Position numbers and translations under genes: made by a program. The notes under the pieces are model-generated. The model did no database searches. It saw nothing but the letters and a program-made list of their open reading frames with translations, and was not told where the DNA came from. From contig JBLWGC010000140.1 in NCBI GenBank assembly GCA_048772705.1, positions 282,143 through 346,142 on the forward strand: a stretch of 64,000 nucleotides of DNA, written 5' to 3'. The DNA comes from Leidyana gryllorum EB-2025a (lineage: Eukaryota; Protista; Apicomplexa). Positions 25,227 through 64,000 of the stretch are shown piece after piece (position 1 is the first letter of the stretch; each line of letters starts with the position of its first letter).

Positions 25227-27116
25227 ATGTTGCTGTCGGCTGGGGAAGCCCCGAATATCGTAGCCACCCCTTGGGGCGAGCTTTCCTTAGCTAATGGCCC
25301 AGCCACAACTTTGTGGTTCAGTCCGTGTACCGATCATAAATGGCTGCAGCTTGAGGAGGATGGGGCCTATAAGTTGTATTTGGAGGTCAGTGGCCCATTA
25401 GAGATCGCTGATATTGCTGAGCTGACCGAGACGCTGAAGAGGAGTCCTGTGGAGCGAGGAGGGCGTCTCACCATTGTAGTCGCGGCTGATGAGTGGACTT
25501 GGACAAAGCCTTCACATTTTCACCTGGAGACTGTCATCTTCAGACGCACTACGCTGCGGAAGTATCATGGAGAGGACGAGGAGTTTTTGGGTTGTGTGGA
25601 GCATTTGAGGGTGACTGAGGTCGATCGATGTCAGCGTCAGGTGGTCAAGTTCCGATGTGCCCGCGCCGCCGGGACACCAGGGATAAAGATACTGAGTGCA
25701 TTGAGTCGACTGATACAGGTTGACCGCGAAAGTCATCTCTGTTCCTTGGAGGTTTACTGCACGAGTATCAGTCGCCAAGCGCTCACTTCTAACTTTGACC
25801 GCGACCTCACCCTGTTTGGAGAAGAAGAGACGTGGAAACTGACTTTCGATGAGAAGAAGCCAAGTCGGGAACTGGAGGTGCACTGGAGTGACTGGGCTGC
25901 ACTGACTCCGAGTCGATGGGGTAGTGAATACCTAAGACTCTTATCGCGCTGTGCGTCAGAGTCGCGCATCAGAGCAGTGCGGTTCATCGCTCCTCACTTC
26001 ACTTGGGCTACGTCACAAGATCCAATTGAAGTGATGATGCCTCTGAGTCTTATTGCCACTGGAAGCGGGAACAACTCATTCGAGGGTCACATAATACTTC
26101 GAGACAAGTTTGAATGGGTGGCTGCCAAAGGGTCTATTGATGTGATGGGCTCCCTCGAAGGTTCCGATATCAGCTTGTGTACAGCAAACGACAGTGTTTC
26201 CAACTGTTTGCCGGCCAACCCATTGATCATTGAAACCCCAAGTAATCGGCCTGGATGGACGATTGAACCACACCGCATTAAGAACCACATCGATGGAGTC
26301 AGGAGTACAGTTGGGACCGGACAAGTGTCTTTAACAACGACGCGGGACGACTCTGTAGTCGACGAGATTGACGGTCTAGCATCCCTGGTGGCTTTCGAAG
26401 ACAGTGTGCAAGAAATGTTGAATGAATGTGTCTCCAAAAGGTGGGTGAAGAACGGCCCTACAAATTACGAACTGCGTCTTGAACACCCTGGCGGTGTTCA
26501 ACTGGAAGATATTGCGACTCTAACCCGTAACCTGCGCGACGCATTGCCGGATGAGGAAAGCGCCAGCGTTTTCATCACCACTCCAAGCTGCCACCGGTCC
26601 AGCAATCTTCGCTTCCACTTGCCAGTACGGGGATTGCACCGGGAGACTTTGAAGTGCCGCGGACGGGCTGGTCGAGAACCCTTGGGCCCCACCACCGCTC
26701 AGGGAGCTGAGACGGTTTCCTTCGCTGCCAATATTGAGACGGAGTTGTTGCGAAATGAATTGGAGATTGCCCGGGAATCGGTCGCGGACGTTTCGAGAGA
26801 CCTGTCCCAGATGACAGAGTCGTTAGCACAATCGAGACTGAAAGCTTCCGAAACGGCGGTGAAAGAGCTGAACCGCGTCGACGAGGTGAGTTTCAAATAC
26901 GATGATGAAATATCTTTGGTGTATCAGCTTCGATCATTGGTGACACAATATGGGGATTGGATAGCTAATAGTGAGACGAGATACGCGGAGATGCAGAAAG
27001 CTATGACGCAAGCGATGGAAGCTCATCAAGCCCAAATCAATACTCTCCTCGACTGTGTGCACACGGCTGCCTCCAACACACCCACTGATTGGGAAAAGTA
27101 TCGCACTTACTGCTGA
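25227..27116 (+). CDS. Array family copy A (divergent, opposite strand), 629 aa with short coiled coil
   Basis: IADIAELT..ADEWTWTKPSHFHL, LIQVDRESHLCSL, LEDIATLTRNLRDALP and NIETELLRN align with the other copies; intronless. Confidence 0.8.
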   Translation: MLLSAGEAPNIVATPWGELSLANGPATTLWFSPCTDHKWLQLEEDGAYKLYLEVSGPLEIADIAELTETLKRSPVERGGRLTIVVAADEWTWTKPSHFHLETVIFRRTTLRKYHGEDEEFLGCVEHLRVTEVDRCQRQVVKFRCARAAGTPGIKILSALSRLIQVDRESHLCSLEVYCTSISRQALTSNFDRDLTLFGEEETWKLTFDEKKPSRELEVHWSDWAALTPSRWGSEYLRLLSRCASESRIRAVRFIAPHFTWATSQDPIEVMMPLSLIATGSGNNSFEGHIILRDKFEWVAAKGSIDVMGSLEGSDISLCTANDSVSNCLPANPLIIETPSNRPGWTIEPHRIKNHIDGVRSTVGTGQVSLTTTRDDSVVDEIDGLASLVAFEDSVQEMLNECVSKRWVKNGPTNYELRLEHPGGVQLEDIATLTRNLRDALPDEESASVFITTPSCHRSSNLRFHLPVRGLHRETLKCRGRAGREPLGPTTAQGAETVSFAANIETELLRNELEIARESVADVSRDLSQMTESLAQSRLKASETAVKELNRVDEVSFKYDDEISLVYQLRSLVTQYGDWIANSETRYAEMQKAMTQAMEAHQAQINTLLDCVHTAASNTPTDWEKYRTYC

Positions 27117-27529
27117 TGCTCAAGTAAGAGTGCTGGGAGTATTGTCGGGCGAGCGGGAGAAGCGTAAGTACACAAATGGGATTCGAGTAGAGTACAAAGC
27201 TTCATGTTGAACATAGTGACGCTCAACAAATCCACTATATGGCCCTCAAGACCAAATTCGAGCCGGCGGGCCACTGGTCCTCTCCACCAATAACATGTGT
27301 CACTCGCCATCGGGACGCACATATTGTCACATCCTCCCGCAGCGATGGCTGCGGTGACATATGCCGCACCTCTGTTGTAAAGAGTTCCCGGAAGGGGCAT
27401 ATGTAAGCGACTGAAAGGAGGGATCCAAGGTATCTGGCATTGCATCTCGCGTCATCAAAGATGAATCGTCGACCTGAGATTCAGAGTGTCAGTGCTCTGC
27501 GCAGCATTCGTCTGCTACTTCCCCTGTCG

Positions 27530-29548
27530 TTAAGACTGTGGGCTCGGCTTTGGTGTGTTCTCAATGTCTGATGTCTCCCCACAGGTGCGATCATGCGTCT
27601 CCGTTTGGTCCAGCTGTACACCCACAACGCGTATGGGGAGATCGGTGTAATCCAACAAGTGCGCGTTTGGCCCAAAAAGGTAGAACAATGCGTTTGTACC
27701 TTCGGGGAGGTGTGACTGTGTGCTCTCGACCAATTCTGCAACGCCTTTTGGATCGATCATCCCAACATGGAATAGTTCCAGGAAATACTTTGTGGGAGAC
27801 AGTGTCAACCATCGATATTGAGAACAATTCTGGAGCAATTTTATGGCGTTGGGTCCTGGATCAAATCGGGTGGGGCAGTGATCGAGTTTCAGGGATGGCA
27901 CTTCGAACACTTTATTCACAATGCGACGGGCAGCCACTTTGATTCCTTTGTCGGCCGAGCTGAATGGTACGAAGACGTTTGAGAGACAGTAATTTGTGAG
28001 TTTGCCTAATGGGCACCACAAAGTGATGTCGTCACCTCTCAGATGTGACAGGATGTGGATGGATCCATTGTCGGCCCAAAGGGTGAAGGGCTTCAGGAAC
28101 GTGAGGCTGCGACGAATAGTCACCCGCGACTTACCCCGTGCACGAAGGGAAAAGGGAACTGTGATCACAAGTGGAGAGGTGTTGGGCTTTGTATCCATCC
28201 AGACAACGTTGAGGGTAAAGTATCTCACAAGCTGAATTTTGTTGGCCCACTGATGGGAGCAGAGTTTGGTGAGCAGGTCTCCGCCCCATTCGCATGGGTG
28301 GAGTTTGGCTGTGTGATTGCTGTCTAGAAGCGTCAAGCATCTTTTGTTATCTTTGGTTGTTGTTAGAGTTATCAGTGTTTTGTAACGTGGACGGCTTATT
28401 GCAAGATTGTTCGCAAAGTGAGTGTCCAGAAATCCCCGGATGTGGTAGTCCCACTCGACAATGAACTCACATTTGTTATGTGATTCTTCCCCTTCAAACC
28501 AGTGCGTGATCGCTCGCAGATCCGCCAAGCTCGGCTGCTCGTACTGGATAGCATCAGGAGAGGGAATGAAAAGCACAGTCTGACGGCTACCGCCTTTTGG
28601 GGCAGAGATGATCAAACGGTCCACGTTGCTCATGAAGTCATCACGAGACTCCATGCCAATGACTCTCCCAATACGCGCTCTGCTGATCAATGTGTGCAAA
28701 TGAAACTCTGCGGGGCCATTGAGTTCCCAACCCCAGCATTTAACGACAAGGCGAACCTCGAGAGCCACTTTCTTCGCATCCAATTGAGAGCGGATTTGTT
28801 GGGTCAGCTGCGCCACGTCTCCTAACGCCATCAGGCCTTGAACGAGTAGTCGAAGTTCGTACCAATCTTTCTCAGCCCTGTAGATCACTTGGCGAGCCGC
28901 ACAGTACCTCAGAAAGTTAGCACAATAGGCGCACACCCGCAGGGTTATGTCTTCCGTCAGTACGATGGATGCACTGATGATCGCTTCGTCGGTGCGCAGT
29001 CTCACCATCGGTATTCTGGGTCCATCGGTATCATCACCCTGCTGATCCACGTCGGAAGAGACCTCAATCATTCCGTCAGCCTCGGTCGAGGTGAGAAAGC
29101 CCTCCGCAGTCGCGTAGCTGCACGACTGGGCTGAAGTTTCGGCTGGCCTCACACCCTTTCCTACCGATTTTCTTCTGCGCGACCCGGATGCCTCGTCGGC
29201 AGCAGAATGCCGTATAGCCACCACCCGTCCACTCAGATCATAGAATATGTGAATCAGCGGTCCTCGGTGGTCCTCCATCCTGGTGGCCTTTCCTTCCTCG
29301 GCTCGCTCGCGAACGACGGCTTGTCCTTCCCTAAATCGTGTCAAACATAGACTTCTCCACCGCGAGATGTTCAGCATAGTGCGCGAAGAGTGATAACAAG
29401 AAGTTCCTTTGCCTCCACCTACAACAAATGCCACCAATGATATAGTGCGTCTGAATGACATTTCTGGAGAAAAGCTGTTGGCCTTCCCAGCGATGACCCT
29501 CGGCGTTTCGCACACAACATACCTCGACATCACGAGGCGGTATTTCAT
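27530..29548 (-). CDS. Array family copy B (divergent; N-terminal extension, no coiled-coil stalk; start uncertain)
   Basis: FLRYC..YELRL..VAQLT..WELNGPAEFHL, GKLTNYCLSNV, VAARRIVNKVF, FDPGPNAIKLLQNC. Confidence 0.75.
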   Translation of the reverse strand: MKYRLVMSRYVVCETPRVIAGKANSFSPEMSFRRTISLVAFVVGGGKGTSCYHSSRTMLNISRWRSLCLTRFREGQAVVRERAEEGKATRMEDHRGPLIHIFYDLSGRVVAIRHSAADEASGSRRRKSVGKGVRPAETSAQSCSYATAEGFLTSTEADGMIEVSSDVDQQGDDTDGPRIPMVRLRTDEAIISASIVLTEDITLRVCAYCANFLRYCAARQVIYRAEKDWYELRLLVQGLMALGDVAQLTQQIRSQLDAKKVALEVRLVVKCWGWELNGPAEFHLHTLISRARIGRVIGMESRDDFMSNVDRLIISAPKGGSRQTVLFIPSPDAIQYEQPSLADLRAITHWFEGEESHNKCEFIVEWDYHIRGFLDTHFANNLAISRPRYKTLITLTTTKDNKRCLTLLDSNHTAKLHPCEWGGDLLTKLCSHQWANKIQLVRYFTLNVVWMDTKPNTSPLVITVPFSLRARGKSRVTIRRSLTFLKPFTLWADNGSIHILSHLRGDDITLWCPLGKLTNYCLSNVFVPFSSADKGIKVAARRIVNKVFEVPSLKLDHCPTRFDPGPNAIKLLQNCSQYRWLTLSPTKYFLELFHVGMIDPKGVAELVESTQSHLPEGTNALFYLFGPNAHLLDYTDLPIRVVGVQLDQTETHDRTCGETSDIENTPKPSPQS

Positions 29549-29609: not shown

Positions 29610-32600
29610 GTCTACCGAGTTGTCGCCCTCTGATCAATTGAGCGATCTCCTCAATCAGCTGTCTGCATCCGTTGTCGAGCTCCCATATTCTTGAGCGATC
29701 AGCTGTCTGCATCAGTTATCGCCCTTCCCCATTCATTCGCACTGAGTTGTCGCAGGGCGATTAATTGAGTGTTCGGACGGCTCGAATAGCCGCCTGGGGT
29801 GTCAACACTTGAGTGTGAGCTAGACGTTCTGGCCAAGTCGTCGCCTGTGGACAGCATTGCTCATTTCGAGGGGTATTGCGCTGCCGCATTCACCAATTAT
29901 AGGCCTATTGCCGCAATCCGGGTGGCCAACTGGGCCAAGGCTCTCGTCTAATTCGGCTTCAATGTGTCATTGTGAGTATCAGTCTCTGTTTGCGCCCCCC
30001 TTCGTGCACTAAACAACTCAATCCGGGCTTTTAATCGGCAATCTCATCCGCCCGAGTCGCCAGTTGTCGCTCCAACGCGTCCATCCAGCCGGTACTCCCA
30101 GCAGCAATCCTCCCTGGCGTAGACACCCACACCAGGTGGAGCGTCCACCAGCTTCCTCACTTCAACGAGGAGATCGCTCTCGGTAACCATGAAGTCTTCG
30201 AAATTTGTGGTTAGGTGGGCCACGCTGTGGTTCTGAGTCGCGACTCGCCCTCGCGATCGTCACGTGGAATCAATCCAAGAAGGTTCACTGGGGGTCGCCG
30301 TGGCGCTTCGATAGGGTTGAGGTACGATGTCAGGTGCTGTGGACCCTTGTCGCCTCAACTGCACGATAGGATCAGTCACAGCCATTTCATTTGCGGTCAA
30401 AGTGGCGATCTGCCTCAATTTGGCGGCGTCTGTTCTTCGCAGTCCGAGACCATTCTCGCGTAACTCTGCGATCTGCGTTTCGTATTCGCGCTCACAAATC
30501 TCTGCACCGTTCTCCAATATCTCAACCTCAGCATTGTTGACTTGTGAGTGGAGGCGACTGGGAAAGCGGTCGTCGTTAGACGGATACGGGCTCGACGTAC
30601 ACTGCTCGCCCGTCACTTTCAGAGCGGAGGTCAGCGGGTCCTGCCTTGTGTACGCCGCAATGTGAACGGTGGCGATTATCCTTCCGTCTGTCGGCAACTC
30701 GACGTGGATCTTTCGGCTTAGTTCGGCCGGATCCTCCAAGCTCACATGGACGTTTCTCCGGATGTTCGAGACATACAAATTTGTCGGCGGCCCCTTGAAA
30801 CCATTCGAGTGGTTCCAATTGTTCCAGGAATCTGGTCACCCGATCCCCGGGATCGATCCATTTGAACTCTTCGGCATCGGTATTCAAGATTGGGAGCACT
30901 TTGTTGTCATTTGGGCAGAAGTGACAATCACTCCGCGGCTTCTGAAGCCTCTGAGACGATTCTGATATGGGATGGAACCACACATCTCCCATCTAACCCG
31001 CCGTCACAGTCACTGATGCGGCTTCAGACTGACAGAGAGATCTCCCTTCGCAAAACAACGGACAATCAACGACATCCCACGTCTGGTAGCACAAAGGCTC
31101 CGCGCTGAATCGATTCTCAAAGATGAGTGTTCAGGCGCCAATGTTTTCATCAATGCAAAAGGGCAGCACTGAAAGACTTTGGGTTATAGCGTTGAGAGCT
31201 CCTTAGGATGCTGCGCATGACGCGGCGTGCCCCGCGTGTGACAAAGTCTACCTCGTCCTGAGTAGGTGTCCTATAGTTGTGCCTGCCCTCGAGTCTAGTT
31301 GGGAGTTCCGGGTTGGGAGGGGTGCGCTATGTTTGACTCGCCATAAGTCCTCGTGAGTTCGCCCGATTGGTGATAACGGGCCAACCTCGAGGCTCACTGA
31401 TCGCCAGTGTCAGAGTTCCGTCCTTGCGCATCCCCTGCCGTTCGCTGACGAACGCCACGGTTCTTAGGACAAATGCACGGGCGCCCCTGCCAGGAACGCG
31501 AAGTGTTGAGCGCAAGATCTACCGTTCCAAAAAAAGAACTTTCTCAAGCTCCGAAATGCGAGAGTGATTCGTCAAACCCCTGTGTGACACGGAGTGTTAG
31601 GGTACTATAGCCCTAGATTAGTGAACCCCCTTTTGCATCTTTTATTTGTTTATATTTTATGTGTGGTGATCTATATGACATATTGGGGCCGGCTGACACG
31701 AAGACACGGGCATCCAAACACGCCTGTGCTCGCCACAAACTGAACTGGTTGGACTAATCAAACTACGTGATGGCGAAGGACGGATTAAGGAGCAAGGCGG
31801 CAAGCAACCAAGAGGAAGATCAAAACCCTACGGTCGACCTTACGGCAGTTCCGAACGCTGATCGGCCTACAGAACCGATCACGAATTAGAGAGCTATTGA
31901 GAGTTTTGGGTTCACTGCTCAGAAGAAGAGATCTTCCAACGGTCCTGTTGACTGGACTCACCTGACTTGTTTTCGGTGCTGAGGGCCGCCGTCCTAGCGA
32001 TCGCGCGATTCCTTCCACTCATTCAGCCTCATTTGACATCAGGTCACTTCCTTCTTTGATAAGTGACAGAGTTGCGACTTGGGGAGGCGAATTCTCTTTA
32101 TTTGACCGTCACGGCCTGGCGGGCACGGAGAATAAAGCCCGTAATGAGACGCGCATGTGTCTTCGCCACGGATAGTACCGACCGACGGATAACGAGAAAT
32201 CCAGAATGGCTGAAACAGACTGACAAGCAAATCAAAGTCTCTCGCGGCAAGTCCTCGACGCTTCCATCGAGCGGAGGACAAGCTGGAAGATCACTAAGCA
32301 GTACAGTGGGCCCCAAATCACACACGTGTCTGTGTGCTGCCTGGCCCTTGACCGACATCCTACCTAACTATAACGCGGGTGGTTATCCGCGCTCAATATG
32401 CAATTTGAAGGCTCTATACTAACATATCAGTCCGCCACACACACGTGCTCTGCGCTCATAAGTCTGACATATTGATCGAGTGAATTCTGATCAAAACTAA
32501 GAGTCGAGGATAGCCTTCACCGAACACCAAACGGACGAAGATGCACTCCTCCAGTCTGGTGCTTATCTCGACAATGATCTGCATCGTCTGCCGCCCCTCG

Positions 32601-33170
32601 GTGCCATGAATTGTCAGTGGCATTTGTTTCCCTCTGAATGATGAGTTCACCAAATTGTCTGAGATCCGGGTGTTTGTGAGTGTTCGCATCGGCAGAACAT
32701 TGAAAGCTCATAGTTTGACCGCCGTCGAAATCGGGCGCAGTGAGTGTTATTCTGACGATACAGTCGAGAAAGTTTGCGCGACTTCGGTCCGGGGCTCTTT
32801 CGGCGGGCACCGCTCAACGGTCAGCGGGATTCTCGAATGTCCAGTCGACGGCTTTGACAGCGACAGAGCATTCGCGATTGATCAAAGTGGACTTCAAGCG
32901 TAAGTCTTTCGTGAGTTCGGTCAATTCGTGGAAGTCGAGTGGTCTTTCAGATCCGCAATTCCACCGCTGCAGTTGCCTGATAAAGGTACCATTGGGCTGA
33001 ATGGCAGCCATTGAGTCAAGCAGTTGTGGCGGGTGAAAATCTGATGGGCGACTCTGATAGATCTGTGGATTCGCTGAGTTTGCAGTGGTGTGTTCAGAAC
33101 CACTGCCCAATGCCGACAAAGGATCGTCCCCACCCTTTCATTGGTCCGGTCAGATTGATGACAGAGGACC
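29610..33170 (-). pseudogene. Array family copy C: frameshifted, split by a ~1.2-kb insertion, start segment inverted
   Basis: Fragments LDFHELTELTKDL, FLDCIVRITLTAPD, IDPGDRVTRFLEQ, LEDPAELSRKIH and NAEVEILEN lie in different frames. Confidence 0.8.
31218..32450. mobile_element. ~1.2-kb non-family insertion in copy C containing an LTR-like TGTTAG...CTAACA segment (31595-32424)
   Basis: Family homology stops at ~31200 and resumes at ~32456. 6-bp terminal inverted repeat on the inner segment, but no matching target-site duplication. Confidence 0.4.
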
Positions 33171-33427: not shown

Positions 33428-35232
33428 TTACCGCCTCCCGAAATAGCTCGTTGAGTCACCGGCATTCGCTGAGGACAATGTAGAACGCGGGACTCGCCGA
33501 ACTCCTTGGATAGTGTTGGTCCAGTTGTTGAGTGCTGTCCCCTGACCACTCAGTCGGGCCGTAGTATCCTCCAGCGTTGCCACCCTTTGACTCAACGCTA
33601 AGTTCGCCTCACTGAGCGCCTCGATCCAATCCCTTTGAAGGCCATTGGAGTCTTGCAGCAGGAGACACCGTTCGCGCACCCTCTCCATCTTCGCCTCACA
33701 TTCCCGTTGTAGCAGTTCAAGAGCGTTCTTCAGAAGTTCGATTTCGACGTCACCGACAGCTCTGCCGCGGGGTGTCGCTGTCGCTGTCGAATCACTCGTC
33801 GCCGCCGTCGTCCTCGTCAAGCCGCAACTGGGGATAGCGTAGGGAGGCGGCCACTGCTTTCCGGTGACTGGAAGAGCGAAGCTCACAGTGCCCTTTCGCT
33901 CGCAGTCGGGCGCCTGAAGGTGAAGAGAGACGTTGACGTTCGCCTCTTTCGGTACCGCTTCGTGAATCCTTCGCGTCAATTCTGCCAAATCTTCGAACAT
34001 CGCTTTCCCTTTGTGTCGGAGATTTAAGACGTAATGATTGTCGGTGGCACCTTTGGACCAATTGAAAGATTCACATTGGCGCAGGAAGTGGATCCCGCGA
34101 TCTCCGGGATCGATCAGTCGGGGCTCTTCAGTACCCATTCGCATCATCGGGAACACTCTATTGCGAATTCGTCCGGCAGTGACGGTGATTCCGCACTTTC
34201 CTGAGGCTTCCGAGACGATCACATTCTCGAGACAGTAATTAGTAAAAGTTCCGCTGCCGCACTGAAACGTCATGTCGCCCGTCAAAGGCGCCTTCAGTTC
34301 CACCGATCCCGTCTCTGAACGGAAGAAGAACCGCCCTGCGCATTGCAGTGGACAGTCAAAGGTCGACAGTTCAGCTTCTGTCGAATGCAGCGTTATGTCA
34401 CAATCGATCTTCAAAGGGGACTCCTCGATGGCCGCTGGTTTCTCCCATTCGAACGAAGGGGCTTCCAATGTCATTAGGTGAATTCCGTTGACAGCTTTGG
34501 ATTTCATAATTTCTCTGATGTTTGCCGGATTGAATGCACTCTGTGAAATTAACATCGGTCCTCGACATTCCCAAATGTAATGTCGTTCATTGGGCCGTTC
34601 TCCAAGCGACAAAGTCACCGTATCCAATCCACGATTGAGGATCATTTCGCGGTCGAATCGACTCTCAAATGGATAGTAGACGTCTGTGCGCTGGCCTAAG
34701 TGGAGGGCCAATGTGCAAAGGTTCGAGTCTCTCTCCACTTGAATCAATTTACTCAGCTCACTGAAGTGTCTGATATCCGGTTGGCAGTAGGCGTTTGCGT
34801 CGGCAGAACAGTAAAAGCTCATTGTTTGGCGTCGATTGTCGTCGGGCGCAGTGAGTGTAATGTCGTCGATAGAATCGAGAAAAGTCGCGCGCCTTCGACC
34901 GCGGGGCTTCTTGGATTCACATCGCTCGATCGTCAGTGGGAGCCAAAAGTGTGAGGGTTTGTCAAATGTCCATTCGCGCGCTTCAATACCAACAGAGCAT
35001 TGGACGTTGAGATCACTCATTTTCAACCGTAAATCCTTCGTGACATCGCGAGTGCCCTCCCATTGCTTTCGATCAGTAGTCTGACAACCCCGCTCTCCTC
35101 ACACCGGAACCAGTCGGCGGTCGAGTCGCAGTCATTGAGGAACGCTCTGGTGGCTGATGACAATAGTACGGGCGCCTCTTCAATCAATCTGACAGGTCCA
35201 ATGAAAGGGTGGGGAGGGTCTTCAATCGACAT
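33428..35232 (-). pseudogene. Array family copy D: frameshifting deletion near 35050, otherwise open
   Basis: MSIEDPPHPFIGPVRL..FLNDCDS start is out of frame with the 532-aa ORF; the conserved DFHxLA codons are missing at the junction. Confidence 0.75.
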
Positions 35233-38631: not shown

Positions 38632-39450
38632 TTAGTCGAGAGAGAGTTTCATTCCGAACAGTCGCTGCGTCTATACCTCAATCTTCGTGGTCAATTGGGC
38701 GGTGGTCGCTCTCGGTGTCTCCGACTGTTCCTTCGATGCATCAGCCTGCCCGACCACTGGACTCTTTGACTCGGTGATGAGAGCATTTTGACTTGTCATC
38801 CTCGGTTCGAGGATTGTGGTGAAAGCCGTCTTATTGGCGCTCAGAGTATCGATCCGGATCAATTGGGCGGCGCCCTCTCCTTTTAGCTCGAAATGTGGCT
38901 CATCCAGTTCTGCGATCACCGCTTCGCATCCCCGCTTCTCTGTAGGCCAAGTCTGTTGAGTTCACCTTCGTCTTGTGTTGGAGCTTCGAGATGTGATGAC
39001 CTTCGGCATCGACTTTGAAACACTCGAAAGATTCGCTCCCTCGCAGTGTTGTGTCTCCGAGAGGTGTTTGGGTCGACAGAACAGTCAAAGCTCATTGTTT
39101 GGCGTCCAACGACGCCGGCGAGTGTGCTTCTTCCGACGGAGTTGAAGAATTCTCGCCCGTGTTCGATCGTGGGGCTCTGCGGGTTCACACCGCTCAATCG
39201 TCAGTAGGACCCAAAAGTGTGAGGGACAGTCGATATGTCCATTCGAATGCGTCGACAAGAGCTGAACGTTTGATGCTCAGGACACTCAGATGGAAGCCCA
39301 GATCCTCCGTGGCTTCGGCCGATTGGTGATGGTATAGTGATCTTCCAATCTTTCGACTCCGTATTTGATGACTTTTGTGTTTCCTAACTACGTAACCATT
39401 CGGCCGAGCGCAGTCTCCGAAAAACAACACTGTGCCCGGAATCTTCACGT
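38632..39450 (-). pseudogene. Array family copy F: internally deleted remnant
   Basis: AEATEDL..VDAFEWT, GRQTMSFDCS, AQLIRIDTL and terminal RLFGMKLSLD* in broken frames. Confidence 0.75.
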
Positions 39451-46900: not shown

Positions 46901-47494
46901 CAATCCCCAATTGAGGGTCATTTCGCGATCGAAGTGACTCCCCCCCAAGGAGTAGATACTCGTGACTTCTTCCGGATATAGCGCCAGTGTGCACAGCATC
47001 GGATCCCTCTCCCTTTGAATGAGTCCACTCAATTCACTGAACTCTCTCAAGTCCGGTTGTTCGTCACAGTTCGCATCAGAAGAACAGTAGAAGCTCATTG
47101 CTTGACGTTCATTGAGGCCGGGCGCGGTGAGAGAGATTTTGTCGATGAAGTCGAGGAATGTGATTCGAGTCCGATCGCGGGGTTCGGAGGGGTCACATCG
47201 CTGAATGGTGAGTGGAACCCAAAAGTGTGAGGGACTGTCGAATGTCCATTCGAACGCTTCGACGACGAGACAGCATGTATCCTCGCGACTGCTAAACCGC
47301 GAGTTTAAATCCTTGGTGACTTCAGCCAACGTGTGGAAGTCGAGTGACCCTTGAGTCTTTTTGAGCCGTAATTCCATAGTCTTGCTGTGCGCATATCGAG
47401 TCCATTGGGCCGAGTCGCAGTCGTCCAAGAACGCCTGCGTGGTCGCTGCCAGAGTAACGGGTGGCTCGGAAGTAGTTGTAGCGGCGTTTCCCAT
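43968..47494 (-). CDS. Array family copy I (MGNAAT start; long repetitive stalk; stop plus frameshift at ~44384 before the terminal motif)
   Basis: About 1036 codons open from the first ATG; the remainder 43968-44383 continues the stalk repeats in another frame and ends QRLLGTKLSLD*. Confidence 0.82.
45040..45722 (-). repeat. 126-bp (42-aa, six-heptad) coding tandem repeat, 5 full copies plus a partial
   Basis: SETQKKINADVTAEIEELKQRGAADNAMITQLTNKLQTVEEQ. Confidence 0.92.
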
Positions 47495-48286: not shown

Positions 48287-49249
48287 TCACCCAGCGCACA
48301 GAACTGGTGGACTCAGAACTGGCTGGAAACCTTCGATTTCCCTTGACATTGGGCGCGGTGCGCGTAACGTCGATTGATCACTGGCACAAAGAGTCAGTGG
48401 TGTGTCGACCCTCAGAAGAGAGTCGTCTTCAGCGGTCATCTCCTTCTCCCATTTGAAGAGCGGAGCCCGGAAGGTAATTTGAGATATTCCATTGAGAGCT
48501 TTGAATTTCGTCGCGCTTCTGATCTGCGACAGATGGAACGGACACTGTGTCATTGACATCGGCTCTCGACATTCAAATTCATAGTGGCGCTCCCCCGGAC
48601 GATCCTCAAGAGAGAGAGTTACAGTGCTCGATTTCCACTGCAGGATGAGATTGCGATCCAACCGACTCTCACATAAACAAAAAACCTCTTCGACTTCCTC
48701 GAGCTCGAGGGCCAAAGTACACAGCTCACAGTCTCTGTCCGGTTGAATTAATTTAGTCATCGCGCTGACTTCAATGATGTTTGGTTGTTTGTAAGTGTTC
48801 GCGTCAGAGGAGCAGTGAAAGCTCATTGTTTGATGCCCTTTGCCGTCGGGCGCAGTGAGTGTAATGTGATCAATCAAGTCGAGGAACGTCGTCCGCCTCC
48901 GATTGCGGGGCTCGTTGGATTCACATCGCCCAATAGTAAGTGGAAGCCAGAAGTGTGAAGGTTTGTCGAATGCCCACTCGGAGGCTTCGACAGCGACAAC
49001 GCATTTGAAGTTGGAACTGACGAAATCCAAACATAGTTTCACGGTGACTTCGGCCAATTTGTGAAAATCGAGCGATCCCTCAGTCTTTTTGATCCGCAAT
49101 TGATAGATTCTGGATTCCTCATAGAGGAACCATTCTGCGGAGTCGCAGTCATTGAGGAACACAGTCACGGCGGGGGACAGTGACATAGGCATCTCGGTGA
49201 TCGAACCACCGAACTTCATGGTCGGGTAGGGGGAAGTCTGAGTCGACAT
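48287..49249 (-). pseudogene. Array family copy J: truncated head, nearly identical to copy L over ~800 bp
   Basis: 48382-49181 matches 54536-55335; homology is lost after TPLTLCA. Confidence 0.8.
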
Positions 49250-55100: not shown

Positions 55101-55403
55101 CCAGAAGTGTGAAGGTTTGTCGAATGCCCACTCGGAGGCTTCGACAGCGACAACGCATTTGAAGTTGGAACTGACGAAATCCAAACATAGTTTCACGGTG
55201 ACTTCGGCCAATTTGTGAAAATCGAGCGATCCCTCAGTCTTTTTGATCCGCAATTGATAGATTCTGGATTCCTCATAGAGGAACCATTCTGCGGAGTCGC
55301 AGTCATTGAGGAACACACTTACGGCGGGGGACAGTGTAACTGGCGCGTCGGTCATCGATTCATTAGATATGATCAACGGAGAGAGAAGACTTCCTGCCGG
55401 CAT
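52173..55403 (-). CDS. Array family copy L, 1076 aa with a 19-unit stalk repeat
   Basis: Intact intronless ORF. Confidence 0.88.
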   Translation of the reverse strand: MPAGSLLSPLIISNESMTDAPVTLSPAVSVFLNDCDSAEWFLYEESRIYQLRIKKTEGSLDFHKLAEVTVKLCLDFVSSNFKCVVAVEASEWAFDKPSHFWLPLTIGRCESNEPRNRRRTTFLDLIDHITLTAPDGKGHQTMSFHCSSDANTYKQPNIIEVSAMTKLIQPDRDCELCTLALELEEVEEVFCLCESRLDRNLILQWKSSTVTLSLEDRPGERHYEFECREPMSMTQCPFHLSQIRSATKFKALNGISQITFRAPLFKWEKEMTAEDDSLLRVDTPLTLCATGTGRSTFAAPLQCNARLLFVSERGSVEVKAPVVGDVKFRCHNGTFTNYCLQNVVVSESSGSRGMEVTAARIENKVFPLMRRGSEEPQLIDPGERGTHFLGQCVSYNWSEGAADHHYVLHLWHRGKANLEDLAELAQRIHDELPKDGTVTASLHLLASDCERKGLVPFALAVTGEQWLSTSHQSDCDLTSTATSNSVAPQDACLQDVSDEVENNVQVELWRNTLELCQCSMNSEREEASERWRWLLEASAAQLLTIDTLIKAGGQMKDQAWAQRQTITRLTHENMIVKGRARTQRNTINHLKGQLGTMGRKAAAQRNSVTQLTDDYEQLKREVETQRNSVTQLTDENIELKREVGNQRNSVSRLTDENAELKREVETQRNSFTQLTDDYEQLTREVGNQRNSVTQLADENAELKREVGNQRNSVTQLADENAELKREVETQRNSFTQLTDDYEQLTREVGNQRNSVTQLADENIELKRELETQRNSVTQLTDENIELKREVETQENTFTQLADDYEELMREVETQRNSVTQLTDENIELKREVGNHRNSVSRLTDENAELKREVETQRNSVTQLTDENIELKREVETQRNSVTQLTDENIELKREVGNHRNSVSRLTDENAELMREVETQRNSATQLTDENIELKREVETQRNSVTQLTDENIELKREVGNHRNSVSRLTDENAELKREVAYNRNSVSRLTGENAELKREVETHRKASESWLDVASTRRLTIDQLTRELNCVRSCRSNLESENATIKRELTLLEESLAEAESGRFRQRLRRIFTSSK
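52393..53592 (-). repeat. 63-bp (21-aa, three-heptad) coding tandem repeat, 19 copies
   Basis: NSVTQLTDENIELKREVETQR and variants. Confidence 0.95.
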
Positions 55404-56286: not shown

Positions 56287-58041
56287 TCAAATTTCTGACA
56301 CGACAGGTGTCTGAGACTCGTCCCGAGCCGAGGCACCGATTGACTTGATCTGAGCGGCCAGCTGAGCGATACTCTCATCCTGAGTCGCAATGCGCGACAA
56401 CAAGCGTTCCTCGAGATCACGCAGGCTCCTCACAGTCTCACTCAAAGTCTTGAGCTGACTGGCTTTGGCCGCATCCGCTGCTTCCAGTCGAGTACATCTG
56501 TTCTCCAAATCTCTGAATTGTGCTTCGTGTCTGCGTTGTTGAGCTTCGGCAGCATTTTTAGACAATTCAATCTCAATGTTCCCGACCACTGAGTCGCATG
56601 TCTCCTGGGGAGACAGATCGTCTCTTGGCGTCGAAGGTCTCGTGCTGATTCGCATTATCTCGTCTCCAAACTTGTACGAGGTGGGTGGGCACTGTTTGCC
56701 CGTCACTTCCAGAGCAAACGTAACAGGGCCCATCCGGTCACAGTCGGGCGCCACAACGTGAACGGAAGCGGTGATCTTTCCATCTTTGGGTAACTCATCG
56801 TGAATTCTCTGTGTCAGTTTGGCCAAATCTTCGAACATCACTTTGCTTTTGTGTCTCAGATTTAAGACGTAATGATTGTCGGTAATGCCTTTGGACCACT
56901 TAACGGACTCACAGTCACGCAGTAATTGGATCGCCTGCTCGCCGGGGTCGATCATTTTTGGCTCTTCGAGGCCCATCTTCATCATCGGGAAGACCTTGTG
57001 CTCAATTCTGGCGGCGGTGACCTTTATCCGCGGTTTCGTGCCATTCATTGCAATCACATTCTCGAGACAGTGATTGGTGAAGGTGCCGTTGCCACAATAG
57101 AATTCCACATCTCCCGTGAACGGCGCCTTCAACTCTACCGATCCTCTGTCGGACTTGAAGAGGAAACGTTCGTTGCACTCCAATGGACACTCAAATGTCG
57201 ATGTCCTCCTCTCTGTGGCGTAGAGGGTCACCGGCAAGTCGATGGTCAAAGGTGAGTCCTCTGAGCCCAGTGTCTTCTCCCATTTGAAAGAGTGCGCTTT
57301 GTAGATCACCTTCGTCACCCCTTCTGGAGTCTCCGAGTGCATCCTCGTCCTCATCAAAGCCATGTTGCAGATGTTCTCAGTGATCACCTTTTCTTCTCGA
57401 TGCTCGTGTATGTAGAGACGTTCTCCAGGTCGCTCTCCAAGGGATAAGGTGAGGGTACTTTTGGGTCGCTGGATGACCATCTCGCGGTCGAAACGACAAT
57501 CCACCAAACCATACACGGATATGGCGTCTCCCACGCCGAGCGCCAATGCACACAGCGCGATATCTCGCTCCACTTGGATATTCTCACTCAGTTCGCAAAA
57601 CTCTCGGATATTAGGTTGTGAGTACAAGTTGGCATCACCAGAAGAGTAGAACCGCATCGTCTGTCGTCCATTCAAGTCGGGCACACTGAGTGTTATCTTG
57701 TCAATAGAGTCGAGGAATCTGGTGCGACTTCGCTCGCGGGGCTCTCTGGGCTCATATCTCTTTATGGTGAGGGGGAGATAAAAGTGTGAGGGTTCATCGA
57801 ATGTCCATTCGAACGCTTCGACAGCGATAGAGCACTTGGCATTGACCATGGATAAACTCAAACATAAATCCTTCGTTATCTCTGCCAATTTGTGGAAGTC
57901 GAGCGACCCTCGCGTTTTTATCAGCCGTAACTGAAAACCTCTGGTCTCCTCGTCACTTAACCATTGTGACGAATCGCAGTCCTCGAGGAATTCAAGCGAG
58001 CGCCGCGACAGTACTACGGGAGGTTTAGTCATCACCGCCAT
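56287..58041 (-). CDS. Array family copy M, 584 aa, short stalk
   Basis: Intact ORF; shares NIEIELSKNAAE and the stalk type with copy N. Confidence 0.88.
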   Translation of the reverse strand: MAVMTKPPVVLSRRSLEFLEDCDSSQWLSDEETRGFQLRLIKTRGSLDFHKLAEITKDLCLSLSMVNAKCSIAVEAFEWTFDEPSHFYLPLTIKRYEPREPRERSRTRFLDSIDKITLSVPDLNGRQTMRFYSSGDANLYSQPNIREFCELSENIQVERDIALCALALGVGDAISVYGLVDCRFDREMVIQRPKSTLTLSLGERPGERLYIHEHREEKVITENICNMALMRTRMHSETPEGVTKVIYKAHSFKWEKTLGSEDSPLTIDLPVTLYATERRTSTFECPLECNERFLFKSDRGSVELKAPFTGDVEFYCGNGTFTNHCLENVIAMNGTKPRIKVTAARIEHKVFPMMKMGLEEPKMIDPGEQAIQLLRDCESVKWSKGITDNHYVLNLRHKSKVMFEDLAKLTQRIHDELPKDGKITASVHVVAPDCDRMGPVTFALEVTGKQCPPTSYKFGDEIMRISTRPSTPRDDLSPQETCDSVVGNIEIELSKNAAEAQQRRHEAQFRDLENRCTRLEAADAAKASQLKTLSETVRSLRDLEERLLSRIATQDESIAQLAAQIKSIGASARDESQTPVVSEI

Positions 58042-58486: not shown

Positions 58487-60334
58487 TCACAATCGTAGTT
58501 TACGGCTCGGTTCGCAAGCAGTCAGAATTGCCCTAGGCGCTGGAGAAGGGCCGGTCGGTCGCTTTTCTGGTGGCCCGCGCAACGCCGCTCTACGGCTTAT
58601 CACCTGCACTTGAGCGGCCAACCGACCGAGGGTTTCATTTTGAGCTGCGATGCGCAGCAGCAACCGATCCTCGATCTCACGCAGATCTCTCAACTTGTTG
58701 TTCAGACTTCTGAGCTGAGCATCTTTGACGGCATCTGCTTCTTCGAGCCGAGAGCATTTGGCCTTCACATCTCTGATCTTTGCGTCGTGTTCGCGTTCTT
58801 GAACTTCAGCTGCATTCTTGGACAGCTCGATCTCAATGTTCTCGAACACTGTGTCGCACGGCTCCGCGAGGGAAAGGTCGTCATTTGGCGTCGACGGTCT
58901 CGTTCTCATCATTTCGTCTTCGACGTTGTGAAAAGTTGGTGGGCACTGTTTGCCTGTCACTTTCAGAGCGAAAGTCACGGGGCCTTTCCGTTCACAGTCG
59001 GGCGCCACAACATGAACAGAAGCGGTGACATTGCCAACTTTTGGGAGTTCATCGCGAATTCTTCGAATTAATTTGGCCAAATCCTCAAAGGATACTTTCC
59101 CATTGTGTCTCAGGTTTAAGACGTAATAATTGTCGGTCACCCCTTTAGACCATTTGAATGACTCGTACTCACGCAACAGTCTGTTTCCCTCCTCTCCGAG
59201 GTCGACCATCTTGGGCTCACCTGTGCCCGTCTCCATCATTGGGAACACTTTATTCACAATCTTGGCCGCAGTAACCTTAATTCCCGGCTGTGAGCCGTTC
59301 ATTGAGATGACATTCTCGGGACAGTAATTGGTGAAGGTGCCGTTCCTACACTGAAACGCCACGTCTCCGATAAAAGGCGCCTTCAGTTCCACTGATCCCC
59401 TCTCAGATCTGAAGAGAAATCGTTTGTTGCACTCCAATGGACACTCAAAAATCGATGTTCGCTCTTCAGTGGCGAGAAGAGTCACCGGAAGGTTAAGGGA
59501 GAGGGGGGAACCGTCAGTGAGTGATGGATTCTCAGACTTGAAGAATTGGGCTTTGAGTGTCAGTGATGTTATTCCATTCAGCGAGCGGTATTTCATTATC
59601 GGATCGATGATAGCGGGATTCAAAATATCTGGTGTCATGAGCATTCCACGGGGATACTCATGGATGCAATGCCGTTCTTCAGGTCCCTCTCCGAGACATA
59701 GTCTCACCTTAATTGGGCGGTAATGGGCAATCAATTCTCGGTCAAAACGGGCTTCAGTAAGGCCATATACGACCTTGTCATCATCCACAGTGAGCGACAG
59801 TGTACACAACGCGCAGTCTCTGTCTGTTTGGATGAGGTCACTCAGTTGGCTGAGATCTCTCATATTCGGTTGGGCGTAAACGTTTGCATCGGCGGCACAC
59901 TGAAAGCTCATTGTTTGGCGCCCCGTGGTGTCGGGTGCAGTGAGCGTAATTTTGTCCACAGAGTCGAGGAGCGTCAAGCGGCTTCGATCACGGGGTTTCT
60001 CGGGTTCGTACCTCCTTATGGTTAGCGGAAGATAAAAGTGTGAGGGTTTGTCGAATATCCATTCGAACGCTTCCACAGCGATGAAGCACTGCAGGTTGAT
60101 GACGGCCAAACTCAAGCATAAGTCTTTCGTGACTTCGGCCAATGTGTGAAAGTCGAGTGGTCCGTCGATCTTTCTGATCCGCAATTGCACAGCTTTTGTT
60201 CCCCCAGGGCGGAGCCATTCGACAGAGTCGCAGTCCTCGAGGAATGCCTTTGCGGACTTGGTCAAGACAACGGGTGCTTTTGTCATCGGTGTTGCAGATC
60301 CATTGGAAGTATAAAAAGGATTCTCAGTCGACAT
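58487..60334 (-). CDS. Array family copy N, 615 aa, short stalk
   Basis: Intact ORF. Confidence 0.88.
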   Translation of the reverse strand: MSTENPFYTSNGSATPMTKAPVVLTKSAKAFLEDCDSVEWLRPGGTKAVQLRIRKIDGPLDFHTLAEVTKDLCLSLAVINLQCFIAVEAFEWIFDKPSHFYLPLTIRRYEPEKPRDRSRLTLLDSVDKITLTAPDTTGRQTMSFQCAADANVYAQPNMRDLSQLSDLIQTDRDCALCTLSLTVDDDKVVYGLTEARFDRELIAHYRPIKVRLCLGEGPEERHCIHEYPRGMLMTPDILNPAIIDPIMKYRSLNGITSLTLKAQFFKSENPSLTDGSPLSLNLPVTLLATEERTSIFECPLECNKRFLFRSERGSVELKAPFIGDVAFQCRNGTFTNYCPENVISMNGSQPGIKVTAAKIVNKVFPMMETGTGEPKMVDLGEEGNRLLREYESFKWSKGVTDNYYVLNLRHNGKVSFEDLAKLIRRIRDELPKVGNVTASVHVVAPDCERKGPVTFALKVTGKQCPPTFHNVEDEMMRTRPSTPNDDLSLAEPCDTVFENIEIELSKNAAEVQEREHDAKIRDVKAKCSRLEEADAVKDAQLRSLNNKLRDLREIEDRLLLRIAAQNETLGRLAAQVQVISRRAALRGPPEKRPTGPSPAPRAILTACEPSRKLRL

Positions 60335-60694: not shown

Positions 60695-62770
60695 TTAGTC
60701 GTCCAATGATAGTTCCATTGCGAGTTGCCGGAGCTTCATCGCCTCCGTCTTAGTGGTCAACTTAGCGATGGTCTCAACCTGAGTGTCCGCCCATTGTTTC
60801 ATTAGTTTCTTCTGCGCTGTCAATTGGCGGCTCAACTCACGGATGAGGGCATCTTGAGTGACCGCTCGCTGTTCCATCGCCTCACTCTTAGTGGTCAACT
60901 TAGCGATGGTCTCAACCTGAGTGTCCGCCCATTGTTTCATCAGTTTCTTCTGCGCTGTCAATTGGCGGCTCAACTCACGGATGAGGGCATCTTGAGTGAC
61001 CGCTCGCTGTTCCATCGCCTCAGTCTTAGTGGTCAAGTGAAGGAGAAGTTCCTCCTGATGTGCTGCTTGTTGCCTCCTTGCCTCAATCTCGGCGGTCAAT
61101 CTGGCATCTCGCTGTTCCGCTCGGGCCTTCACCTCAGTCAAAAACTTTATCTGTACCGATTGACTGGCCTTCACTTCCTGTAACTCACGGAACCGTCCAT
61201 ACAACTCCCCCAAGCTAGCTTCGCATTCACGCTGACACAGATCGGTAGCGTTCCTCGCGAGCTCGATTCCAATGTTGCCAACCGCTGAGCCACAACGTCG
61301 CTCTGGAGAGTCCTGTTGCATTTCTGGCAAATCTCGTGGAGTGGTACTGGCAGCATTGTAACCCGACTGTGAGTCTGGCGGTGGACACTTCTCGCCTGTG
61401 ACTTCCAAAGCGAACGTCACCGGGCCTCTCCTTTCGCAGTCGGGAGCAACAGCGTGAAGGGCGGCGGTAACCTCCCCGTATTTCGGTAACTCATCATGGA
61501 TTTTTCGCGTGAGTTCGGCCAGATCCTCCAATTTCACTTTCCCTTTGTGTCGGAGACTTAAGACGTAATGATTTGCGGCAGCATCTTTGAACCATTTGAA
61601 AGATTCACAATCTCGCAATAATTGGATCGTGCGATCTCCGGGATCGATCAATCGAGGCTCTTCTATTCCGGTTGTCATCATTGGAAACACTCGATTTTCA
61701 ATTCGGGCCGCATTGACTCTCACTCCGCAATTGCCTGAGGCCTCTGGCAATATTACGTTGTCGAGACAGTAATTAGTGAAGGTTCCGCTGCCGCACTGCA
61801 GACTCATATCTCCCCTAAGGTGGGCCTTCACTTCTAGCGATCCCGCTTCGGATTGGAAGACAAACGGCTGAATGCACTCCAACGGACACTCGAAGGTCGA
61901 CGTCTGATTATCAGTGGCGCAAAGGGTCAGCGGTATCTCAATCTTCAGATGAGAATCTTCGATGCTCTTTGGTCTCTCCCACTCGAAGGAGGGGGCTTTG
62001 CACGTCAGTTGGGTTATTCCGCTGAGAGCTCTGGATTCCATTATCTCTCTGATGTCCACCAGACTGGATGGATTCTGTGATATCAACATTCGTTCTCGAC
62101 GTTCGTAGATATAATGGCGTTCTTGGGGTCCATCTCCAAGAGACATAGTGACTATGATGGATTTCCAATCGAAGATCATTTCGCGGTCAAAGCAACTCTT
62201 ACACCAACCGTAGACACCTTCGACTTCTCCCGGATGGAGAGTCAATGAGCAAAGGTTCGAGTCTCTCTCCACTTGAATCAATTTACTCAACTCACAGAAC
62301 TCTCCGATATCCGGTTGTTTGTAGGCGTTTGCGTCGGCAGAACAGTGAAATCTCATTGTTTGGCGCCCATTGGAGTCGGGCGCAGTGAGTGTAATCTTAT
62401 CGATGGAGTCGAGAAACGTCGCACGACTTCGACCGCGGGGCTTCTTGGGTTCACATCGCTCGATCGTCAGTGGGAGCCAAAAGTGTGAGGGTTTGTTGTA
62501 CGTCCACTCGAACGCTTGGACCGCAATAGAGCATTGGACATTGAGGTTGACAAAATGGAAACACAAACTCTTAATTACGTCGGCCAATTTGTGGAGGTCG
62601 AGTGACCCTTCAGTCTTTCGGATCCGCAGTTGCACAGCATTGGTCTCTTCATAATGGAACCATTCAGCTGAGTCGCAGTCTCTCAGAAATGCAGTGGTGG
62701 TCGAAGACAATGTAATGGGTGCCTGTGCCATCGGTACTACAGCTCCACTAGAAGGGGGCAGGGAGGGCAT
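60695..62770 (-). CDS. Array family copy O, ~690 aa with a 126-bp (42-aa) stalk duplication; ends RQLAMELSLDD
   Basis: Intact ORF; first ATG at 62770; EAMEQRAVTQDALIRELSRQLTAQKKLMKQWADTQVETIAKLTTK occurs twice. Confidence 0.88.
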   Translation of the reverse strand: MPSLPPSSGAVVPMAQAPITLSSTTTAFLRDCDSAEWFHYEETNAVQLRIRKTEGSLDLHKLADVIKSLCFHFVNLNVQCSIAVQAFEWTYNKPSHFWLPLTIERCEPKKPRGRSRATFLDSIDKITLTAPDSNGRQTMRFHCSADANAYKQPDIGEFCELSKLIQVERDSNLCSLTLHPGEVEGVYGWCKSCFDREMIFDWKSIIVTMSLGDGPQERHYIYERRERMLISQNPSSLVDIREIMESRALSGITQLTCKAPSFEWERPKSIEDSHLKIEIPLTLCATDNQTSTFECPLECIQPFVFQSEAGSLEVKAHLRGDMSLQCGSGTFTNYCLDNVILPEASGNCGVRVNAARIENRVFPMMTTGIEEPRLIDPGDRTIQLLRDCESFKWFKDAAANHYVLSLRHKGKVKLEDLAELTRKIHDELPKYGEVTAALHAVAPDCERRGPVTFALEVTGEKCPPPDSQSGYNAASTTPRDLPEMQQDSPERRCGSAVGNIGIELARNATDLCQRECEASLGELYGRFRELQEVKASQSVQIKFLTEVKARAEQRDARLTAEIEARRQQAAHQEELLLHLTTKTEAMEQRAVTQDALIRELSRQLTAQKKLMKQWADTQVETIAKLTTKSEAMEQRAVTQDALIRELSRQLTAQKKLMKQWADTQVETIAKLTTKTEAMKLRQLAMELSLDD

Positions 62771-63104
62771 TGTTAACCACGAGACTCGAAGCAAAAAGGT
62801 GTCAAAGGATAAAAAGTGGGTCAAATCCGATCACATCAGATCTCTCCGAATGGGAAATGTGGACAGTGCCGTCGAGTTCCACACAACAGCGCACGTGAAG
62901 ATTAACGCCGCATCACAACACTCACGCGTTCGGATTGGATTCCCTTTGAATGTTCTCTCTGGGAACCTCGAATACCACAGGGTTTTGGTTATTTGATGCG
63001 ACCTATCAAAAAGTCAACCCGCGAGCCCTTCATTTGAAGGGACCGAATTTGCTATGTCTCCATTCGAGCAACGATTACGAATACCGACTTACCAATACTG
63101 ATGC

Positions 63105-64000
63105 TCAACTTAGCAGCAACATTTTCATTCCGAGTTGCCGCTGTTCCAACGCCTCAGTTTTGGTGGTCAACAGAGCGATATTCTCCAGCTGAGCTGCGCT
63201 CTGTCGCTCCATCATTTCAACCTGAGCCCTCAAGCTGGCGATGATGGCATCTTGAATCATCTCTCGTTCCTTTAACTGCTGATTTTCACGAATTAAAGTG
63301 GCCTCTCTCGCAGTCAAATCGGCGATAGTTGCAGCAGTGTCAGAGGTCAGCTGAGCAATAATCTCTGCCCGAGTCGCCAGAGTCTTGTCTTGCGCCGTCA
63401 GACGACTCTTCAGTTCCCCAATCGTTGCATCGTGGGACTCCTTCCACTGCATCGCCTGATTAAGTGTCAGATTGAGAGCTTTCAAGGCAGCCAACAGTGC
63501 TTCACTGAAAGTGAATTGGGCCATAGCTGTCTCCCGCATCCGATCCCACTCTTCTGTGGAGTCTCCAGTGCCCCCTCCAATGTGGAGTGACAGATTTCAA
63601 CGACTTTCCTCAGAGGCTCAATCTGGATGTCTCCTGACAGTGTACCAGCATCCCCTCCAAGCGTCTCGTCTGCGGTTCCCGTCGCACCGCTCCGGCGTCG
63701 TCGGTGTCATGCCGCCGCCGTCAGTCCCACAATCTGGCGGCAGCTACTTTTCTCCAGACATGTCCAAAGCAAAAAGAAGCGGAGCAGTACCGTTCACAGT
63801 CGCGTGCCTGAGGGTGACCGGAGGCGGTGACCTCTCCGGTCATCGGCAGCTCATCGTGAATTCTTTGTGTCAAATCGGCCGAATGATATTTCGATCTCAC
63901 TCTCCCTCTATGTTTCAGCTCCGAGACGTAATGATTTTCCAAAGATTCACACGCCGCAATAATTGGATCGCGCGATCTCCGCGATTATCTATTGGGCCGG
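63105..64000 (-). pseudogene. Array family copy P: 3' part, frameshifted, runs off the window edge
   Basis: NHYVSELKHRG..ADLTQRIHDELP and a stalk ending QRQLGMKMLLLS in separate ORFs. Confidence 0.75.

Follow-up and report, generated by a model that had tools for sequence, protein, structure and literature searches.

We analysed a stretch of 64,000 nucleotides (the window) from the genome of the eugregarine Leidyana gryllorum, which ends in a 39-kb tandem array of 16 copies (A to P) of one protein family. The window comprises positions 282143–346142 of contig JBLWGC010000140.1 (C140), and its right edge coincides with the end of that contig; the assembly consists of 237 contigs, has a total length of 15.5 Mb and a G+C content of about 52%. 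The copies were delimited by tblastn searches of the window with copy N and by a profile search of the whole assembly. The array occupies positions 25227–64000, and 15 of the 16 copies lie on the minus strand, copy A being the only one on the plus strand. Eight copies are intact (A, B, G, K, L, M, N and O), one has a late lesion (I) and the other seven are decayed, frameshifted, truncated or fragmentary (C, D, E, F, H, J and P). A preliminary description of the locus, made by reading the DNA, had given the same counts of copies, orientations and states, and both searches recovered all of them. The family is new at the sequence level and is built from known structural elements, and the base composition of the array was the same as that of its flanks.

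Alignment of the copies showed a head of 451–472 amino acids (aa), followed by a disordered Ser/Thr/Pro-rich linker of 21–41 aa, a neck motif (N[IV]xIEL[LS][KR]N) and a tail of 97–574 aa. The linker, the neck and the length-variable stalk were thus all present as first described; the head, put at the time at about 430 aa, measured about 450–470 aa. The neck motif was retained even in copy A, at 26% identity. A hydrophobic periodicity of 3.5 residues was detected in all stalks (z = 2.8–62 versus shuffles), as would be expected of the fibrous proteins that had been proposed. The stalk DNA contains tandem repeats of 42, 63, 126, 138 and 189 nt, and the longest stalks consist mostly of tandem units of 14, 21, 42, 46 or 63 aa. 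When compared with Pfam and NCBIfam the stalks matched coiled-coil families only, for example SMC, Rad50 and KASH_CCD. The tails behave as alpha-helical heptad coiled coils, and at 0.1485 nm per residue their computed span is about 14–85 nm.

Copy A (25227–27116) is intact and divergent. Its 629 aa include head, linker, neck (NIETELLRN) and a 128-aa stalk with a periodicity z of 5.3, and in tblastn it was 26% identical to copy N over N residues 11–556 (E = 2.8e-38). The most divergent copy is B (27530–29548, minus strand like all that follow), an intact open reading frame (ORF) of 672 aa whose head is preceded by a long N-terminal extension and followed by a short tail of Ser, Thr and Pro, the stalk being absent (23% identity to copy N over residues 31–467, E = 1e-22, tblastn). 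Copy G (39698–42085, 795 aa, intact) has a 302-aa stalk (periodicity z = 15.7) and a tail-anchor-like end, and copy K (49502–51841, 779 aa, intact) starts with MGNAVTR and has a 282-aa stalk. The 1076-aa product of the intact copy L (52173–55403) includes a 574-aa stalk of about 19 tandem 21-aa units (63 nt) with a higher-order period of 189 nt, for which the periodicity z was 62. A 484-aa ORF antisense to this stalk (52395–53849, plus strand) arises as a side effect of the 63-nt tandem repeat and is not a gene. Copies M (56287–58041, 584 aa, 97-aa stalk) and N (58487–60334, 615 aa), both intact, are sisters with 60% identity, and N served as the reference for the structure model. The intact copy O (60695–62770) encodes 691 aa from the first ATG, with a 193-aa stalk containing 46-aa tandem repeats (138 nt).

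The lesion in copy I (44043–47494) lies near the end of the gene. Its ORF (44384–47494) encodes 1036 aa from the first ATG, with the start MGNAATT and a stalk of at least 544 aa made of 42-aa and 21-aa repeats, and these repeats extend beyond the stop codon to position 44043. The two parts of the decayed copy C (30260–33075), one covering the C-terminal part of the head and the stalk (30260–31076) and the other the N-terminal part (32628–33075), are separated by about 1.5 kb of unmatched DNA, and TGA and TAG stops occur within the matches. Copy D (33428–35232) is a 532-aa ORF without a proper start, head residues 1–60 being found upstream in another frame (35050–35232). A frameshift near 37017 divides copy E (35576–38258) into a head ORF (37014–38258) and an ORF holding the C-terminal module and the stalk (36319–37017). 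Copy F (39142–39436) is a short head fragment (profile positions 27–124); copy H (42735–43804) is decayed, with several TGA stops and matches to profile positions 101–191 and 403–521; copy J (48287–49249) is a truncated head of 320 aa; and copy P (63766–64000), which comprises a C-terminal head module, is decayed and interrupted where the contig ends.

It had been stated that the array continues past the edge of the window. That edge is the end of contig C140, so that a continuation could not be read directly; further family copies were found at the end of contig C204, one frameshifted, one intact (634 aa) and one decayed fragment. Both contigs end within decayed copies (63766–64000 in the window and 9346–9884 of stretch L004), and in orientation and residue range the two end fragments would be compatible with a single pseudogene that is divided by about 375 nt missing from the assembly. 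Telomere repeats were absent from both contig ends, and the two ends did not overlap. Between the C204 copies and the terminal fragment lies an 886-aa ORF with a proline-rich centre (L004 6276–8936, minus strand), for which there was no Pfam match.

Outside the array the head profile also matched five ORFs of 1117–1501 aa, four on contig C104, with three of the long forms clustered at C104:1114–1125 kb, and one on C208. These long forms (L003 2944–7446 and L005 4284–7634 on the plus strand; L006 4105–7926, L007 1102–4572 and L008 4146–7547 on the minus strand) contain the head core (profile positions ~20–337) followed by a common module of about 640 aa, and their conserved C-terminal region has invariant Cys/His positions. 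The 1501-aa form has two head units in tandem. The family total is about 19 stalked copies and five long forms, and by these profile matches the array family belongs to a wider superfamily that includes the five long-form genes.

The coding sequence of the array is intronless, as the preliminary description had it. In every intact copy the first in-frame ATG was located 10–25 codons ahead of the conserved domain, with an in-frame stop 1–27 codons 5' of that ATG and no other upstream ATG. This placement of ATG and stop indicates single-exon genes starting at these positions and argues against a hidden signal-peptide exon. An aconitase/IRP-like gene at 10766–13662 (plus strand; Pfam Aconitase and Aconitase_C) is split over at least three ORFs, which indicates that neighbouring genes have introns whereas the array genes do not. 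The upstream regions of the copies could not be aligned, except for some leader sequence common to I and K, and therefore no common promoter motif can be claimed.

No N-terminal hydrophobic segment or signal peptide was detected in any copy. The C-terminus of copy G contains a hydrophobic segment (residues 772–792, Kyte–Doolittle >1.8) followed by only three residues, an arrangement that resembles a tail anchor, and copies I and K start with MGNAxT, a candidate N-myristoylation signal. The putative membrane-attachment signals present, the tail anchor and the MG start, would be of the cytosolic kind. Both observations are in line with the earlier proposal that the proteins lack a signal peptide and face the cytosol.

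Pairwise Nei–Gojobori comparison of the intact heads gave ratios of nonsynonymous to synonymous substitution rates (dN/dS) of 0.17–0.47, with dS mostly 0.8–2, and a 30-codon sliding window over the heads, scored by the corresponding ratio of proportions (pN/pS), showed no value above 0.82. The N-terminal leader, residues 170–275 and the linker were the most variable head parts. The intact heads are under purifying selection. The preliminary description had linked a ratio near 1, together with a lack of expression, to a dead repeat cluster; the ratios found were well below 1, which argues that the array is not one. The seven decayed copies and the location at a contig end could be taken to suggest a dead or selfish repeat cluster without organismal function. 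We consider this very improbable, since eight to nine ORFs of 584–1076 aa have stayed open despite a synonymous divergence of at least 1, dN/dS is as given above, even copy A has kept the neck motif, and transposon domains are missing: no reverse transcriptase, integrase, transposase or capsid domain was found in Pfam or NCBIfam.

The tree of the family showed a star-like core clade in which the neighbour pairs N–M, L–J, Q1–Q2 and I–E were grouped, and A and B were placed on long branches. Copy E is a chimera: its first ~880 nt are 55–74% identical to copy I and the remainder is 98–100% identical. Within copy J a tract of 823 bp (48382–49204) was 98.7% identical to copy L, and the L–J dS was 0.15. 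These two sharp exchange tracts indicate ongoing recombination, and they bear out the birth-and-death mode with recombination that had been suggested for the family. The stalk of copy E is interrupted by about 600 bp without similarity to the family (35731–36326), and the flanks of this interruption (35576–35730 and 36327–36472) match the 126-nt repeat of copy I. The processes by which the array grows and decays are local duplication, gene conversion or unequal exchange, frameshifting and insertion, and the family is, on this evidence, old, functional and still being reshuffled.

Similar turnover is seen in immune gene clusters, and the proteins might act as an intracellular sensor or defence system, with heads that recognise a foreign ligand (for example of hyperparasitic microsporidia or gregarine viruses), coiled coils that drive assembly and an array that turns over by birth and death. 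The tandem arrangement, the decay of seven of the 16 copies, the gene conversion and the chimeras would all suit such a system, and so would a cytosolic topology and restriction to one lineage. We regard it as unlikely, given that no effector, nucleotide-binding or death-like domain was found, the output of PADLOC, NCBIfam and Pfam being coiled-coil noise. The PADLOC matches were limited to weak coiled-coil ones in copy G (PbeC, LmuB and JetC; E = 1e-3 to 2e-3). The dN/dS range of the heads, with no window above 1, also speaks against it, and the paralogues are old (dS at least 1), hence there has been no rapid recent diversification.

No match for the family was found in roughly 15 billion public proteins. 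Pfam, searched at E values up to 1 with array and long-form proteins, yielded no relative, nor did the PDB sequences. Copy N had no match among 5.8 billion proteins in a word-indexed search, and a profile of 14 heads gave none when compared with 1.84 billion representative proteins. As a control, the head profile scored the most divergent long form of the same genome at 176 bits (E = 6.6e-47) at full-library database size; a relative as distant as this long form would therefore have been seen. Neither an ESM Atlas feature search nor a pattern scan of metagenome DNA revealed a relative, and the literature searched holds no description of such a family. A confident full-length match to a characterised family or transposon protein, which by the preliminary description would have removed the novelty, was not found. 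So far the family is seen only in this eugregarine genome, to judge from these searches. Since the collections include a fairly close gregarine transcriptome, either that organism lacks the family or did not express it at the stage sampled, or the family is confined to a narrower lineage. Orphan status is less surprising here because poorly sampled gregarine genomes hold many orphan genes.

The head was modelled with AlphaFold2 from residues 1–530 of copy N and an alignment of 14 paralogues, which gave a predicted local distance difference test score (pLDDT) of 80.6 and a predicted template modelling score of 0.66. In the model a beta-beta-alpha-beta-beta module (module 1, residues 14–108) is followed by an alpha/beta region, an all-beta segment forming a beta-helix (~201–363), a second module (module 2, 380–463), a disordered linker (468–496) and a helix from residue 500. 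Modules 1 and 2 are homologous (hhalign probability 97%, E = 3.8e-11). Exhaustive structural alignment with VIA-align aligned residues 201–363 to right-handed beta-helices, with the best matches to EtpA (Z = 8.2, root-mean-square deviation 3.5 Å, 121 aligned residues) and the secretion domain of FHA (Z = 7.9), and lower ones to ice-binding proteins, tailspikes and bactofilin (Z = 5.5–5.6); Z values of this order go with a common fold and not with a family. The head is confidently predicted to be a short right-handed beta-helix and an alpha/beta region bracketed by a duplicated module. No significant match for the head model was found by Foldseek in the PDB, and an ESM Atlas shape search likewise returned nothing. 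Foldseek rows for clostridial toxins and the central domain of acetyl-CoA carboxylase, at template modelling scores of 0.1–0.16, were discarded. The statement in the preliminary description that no domain could be recognised holds for characterised families and transposons, to which there was no match; it does not hold for the fold, as the head contains the predicted beta-helix and the duplicated module.

Stronger structural similarity was obtained with the long forms, in which the predicted beta-helix is extended. The overall pLDDT of the long-form model was poor (52), and only its beta-helix part, with a pLDDT of 70–89, was used. In VIA-align this part matched HxuA (Z = 19.8), HMW1 (19.3), EtpA (18.9) and FHA (16.6), as compared with 11–15 for other beta-helices; Fap2, a secreted adhesin, was also among the best fold matches of the heads and long forms. 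No Pfam domain and no homologue of the long forms was found, including in the word-indexed search of 5.8 billion proteins. The term haemagglutinin-like beta-helix is, for the long forms, a description at the level of the predicted fold and a lead on origin, and does not denote membership. The lead is that the family could descend from a horizontally acquired bacterial gene of the TpsA/filamentous-haemagglutinin type, the secretion signals having been lost later and the coiled-coil tail gained in the array. Such an origin would be compatible with any role of the proteins. It is suggested by the TPS-domain beta-helices, which lead the long-form list by 4–7 Z units and also lead the list for the array head, by the intronless genes amid intron-bearing neighbours, and by long-form segments that by eye are of the NxGxIxxxGxIxxxA kind. 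We nevertheless think a horizontal origin rather improbable: there was no sequence match to bacterial proteins or to the Pfam TPS and haemagglutinin-repeat models, the base composition is like that of the flanks, confidence in the long-form model is low and Foldseek was silent.

The same fold matches bear on what the proteins may do. As secreted adhesins (EtpA, FHA, HMW1, HxuA and Fap2) head the fold matches both for the head and for the long forms, the family could encode exposed adhesins that copy the layout of bacterial fibrous adhesins and travel to the surface of the parasite or to the host along a route not yet recognised. Such adhesins would serve in attachment to the host epithelium or in recognition during gamont pairing (syzygy), and their reach and specificity would be tuned by the length of the stalk and by variation of the head. 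The Ser/Thr-rich linker, which is like O-glycosylated spacers, and the copy-number turnover with its exchange tracts would agree with this. Yet no copy has a signal peptide although the start codons are well defined, the tail anchor and the MG start would place the protein in the cytosol, and the heads show purifying selection with no hypervariable window. An adhesin role is in our judgement a minor candidate.

The reading that we favour, tentatively and at somewhat less than an even chance, is that the proteins are tethers or spacers of the gregarine cortex, an unusually elaborate structure (pellicle and epicytic folds), or of endomembranes. The array proteins would lie on the cytosolic side as parallel coiled-coil oligomers, and the stalk would keep a binding head of beta-helix type at a fixed, paralogue-specific distance (~14–85 nm) from the membrane or filament to which the other end is attached. 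Copy G may be fixed by its C-terminal tail anchor and copies I and K by an N-terminal myristoyl group. The role would be analogous, not homologous, to that of golgins or GAP45.

Several points weigh against the tether reading. A beta-helix head carried by a coiled-coil stalk is a layout typical of adhesins outside the cell and accords better with an exported role than with a cytoskeletal one, and heavy pseudogenisation (here seven of 16 copies) together with exchange tracts is commoner in contingency, immune or antigen families than in structural ones. Of the nine ORFs that encode a stalk and have no frameshift within them (A, D, G, I, K, L, M, N and O), only three carry a membrane-attachment signal, the myristoylation of I and K is a call made from the motif alone, and copy B is stalkless. 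The TpsA-like similarity comes from one aligner and from a model with the low overall pLDDT given above, and Foldseek was silent for the head and long-form models alike. A dimer prediction for two copies of N residues 490–600 had a score of 0.19, which counts neither way on oligomerisation.

A wider proposal can be framed from these elements. The array and the five long forms may constitute a gregarine-specific superfamily built around a haemagglutinin-like beta-helix to which a new cap module, present in duplicate, has been added, re-used inside the cell either as variable-length 'molecular rulers' or tethers that organise epicytic folds and pellicle or as a cytosolic recognition system against hyperparasites. 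It would be an inward-facing eukaryotic counterpart of the bacterial adhesins with head, neck, stalk and anchor. Taken jointly, these statements have a small chance of all being correct. Of the large apicomplexan branches, gregarines have received the least study, and to our knowledge there is almost no molecular parts list for their cortex, including the epicytic folds, the gliding apparatus and the syzygy junctions. Purifying selection and a predicted beta-helix head on a 14–85 nm stalk make the family a concrete candidate for components of the cortex or of tethers. The array also offers a clean natural series for how repeat number sets stalk length and, if the models are right, an example of how a eukaryote can join a beta-helix of bacterial-adhesin type to a new module and a coiled coil.

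Three other loci were noted in the window. A single-exon gene at 18283–19911 (minus strand) encodes a 542-aa Cys-rich protein whose start resembles a signal peptide and which contains about 20 CPxG[FY]...C repeats. The protein was 66% identical to a transcript of the eugregarine Blabericola migrator, 75% and 64% identical to Logan contigs and 25% identical to Cryptosporidium oocyst wall protein 4, and is probably an oocyst-wall protein. These identities, with Blabericola migrator as the nearest named match, place the genome among the eugregarines, and the protein collections searched do not include the organism itself. The product of an ORF at 3798–6998 (minus strand) has 1066 aa and a high content of Pro, Ser and His; the motifs 'SSHHQ' and 'P..S[MV]PL' recur in it, and it had no Pfam match. 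ORFs at 721–2501 (plus strand) resemble by eye the exons of a candidate membrane-bound O-acyltransferase (MBOAT-like, with the conserved His in 'AAIWHK').

Among known systems, bactofilins also have a small right-handed beta-helix, which they put to cytoskeletal use, and their fold similarity to the head (Z = 5.5–5.6) is in the range expected for any beta-helix. There was no Pfam bactofilin match, and the flanking domains differ. The tandem families of other apicomplexans (for instance SRS, var/rif, Theileria SVSP and Cryptosporidium MEDLE/SKSR) are likewise lineage-restricted and clustered, with gene conversion, pseudogenes and repeats that break assemblies. Their products, in contrast to those of the array, are secreted or displayed on the surface and carry signal peptides; none has this head, neck and stalk, and no sequence or profile similarity was found.

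With the TpsA proteins (FHA, HMW1, HxuA and EtpA) the predicted right-handed beta-helix would be held in common, their TPS domains being the best fold matches in VIA-align, which Foldseek did not confirm. The array proteins differ from them in being eukaryotic, apparently cytosolic and without a signal peptide, and there was no sequence similarity and no match to the Pfam TPS or haemagglutinin-repeat models or to NCBIfam. Moreover, the beta-helix of the array is short (~160 aa) and flanked by a duplicated module that has no counterpart in TpsA. No ORF for a TpsB (Omp85-type) transporter was noticed beside the array or the long forms, although no dedicated search was made. The order of parts is that of the trimeric autotransporter adhesins (YadA, BadA and UspA1), namely a beta-rich head, a short neck and a stalk that varies with repeat number, to which copy G adds a C-terminal anchor. 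This putative anchor is a single hydrophobic helix and not a beta-barrel, a signal peptide and the YadA-type head, neck and anchor domains (Pfam) are missing, and the likeness would be one of architecture only.

Golgins (giantin, golgin-84 and CASP, which have a tail anchor) and GAP45 (with N-terminal acylation) are long cytosolic coiled coils that serve as spacers or tethers of defined length. The array proteins have no GRIP, GRAB or GAP45 domain and no sequence similarity to these proteins; their head is a predicted beta-helix, most paralogues are anchorless, and the genes are tandemly amplified and partly decayed. What the two groups would have in common is the arrangement suggested for copy G, with its tail anchor, and for copies I and K, with their MG start: a coiled coil with a putative fixation at one end.

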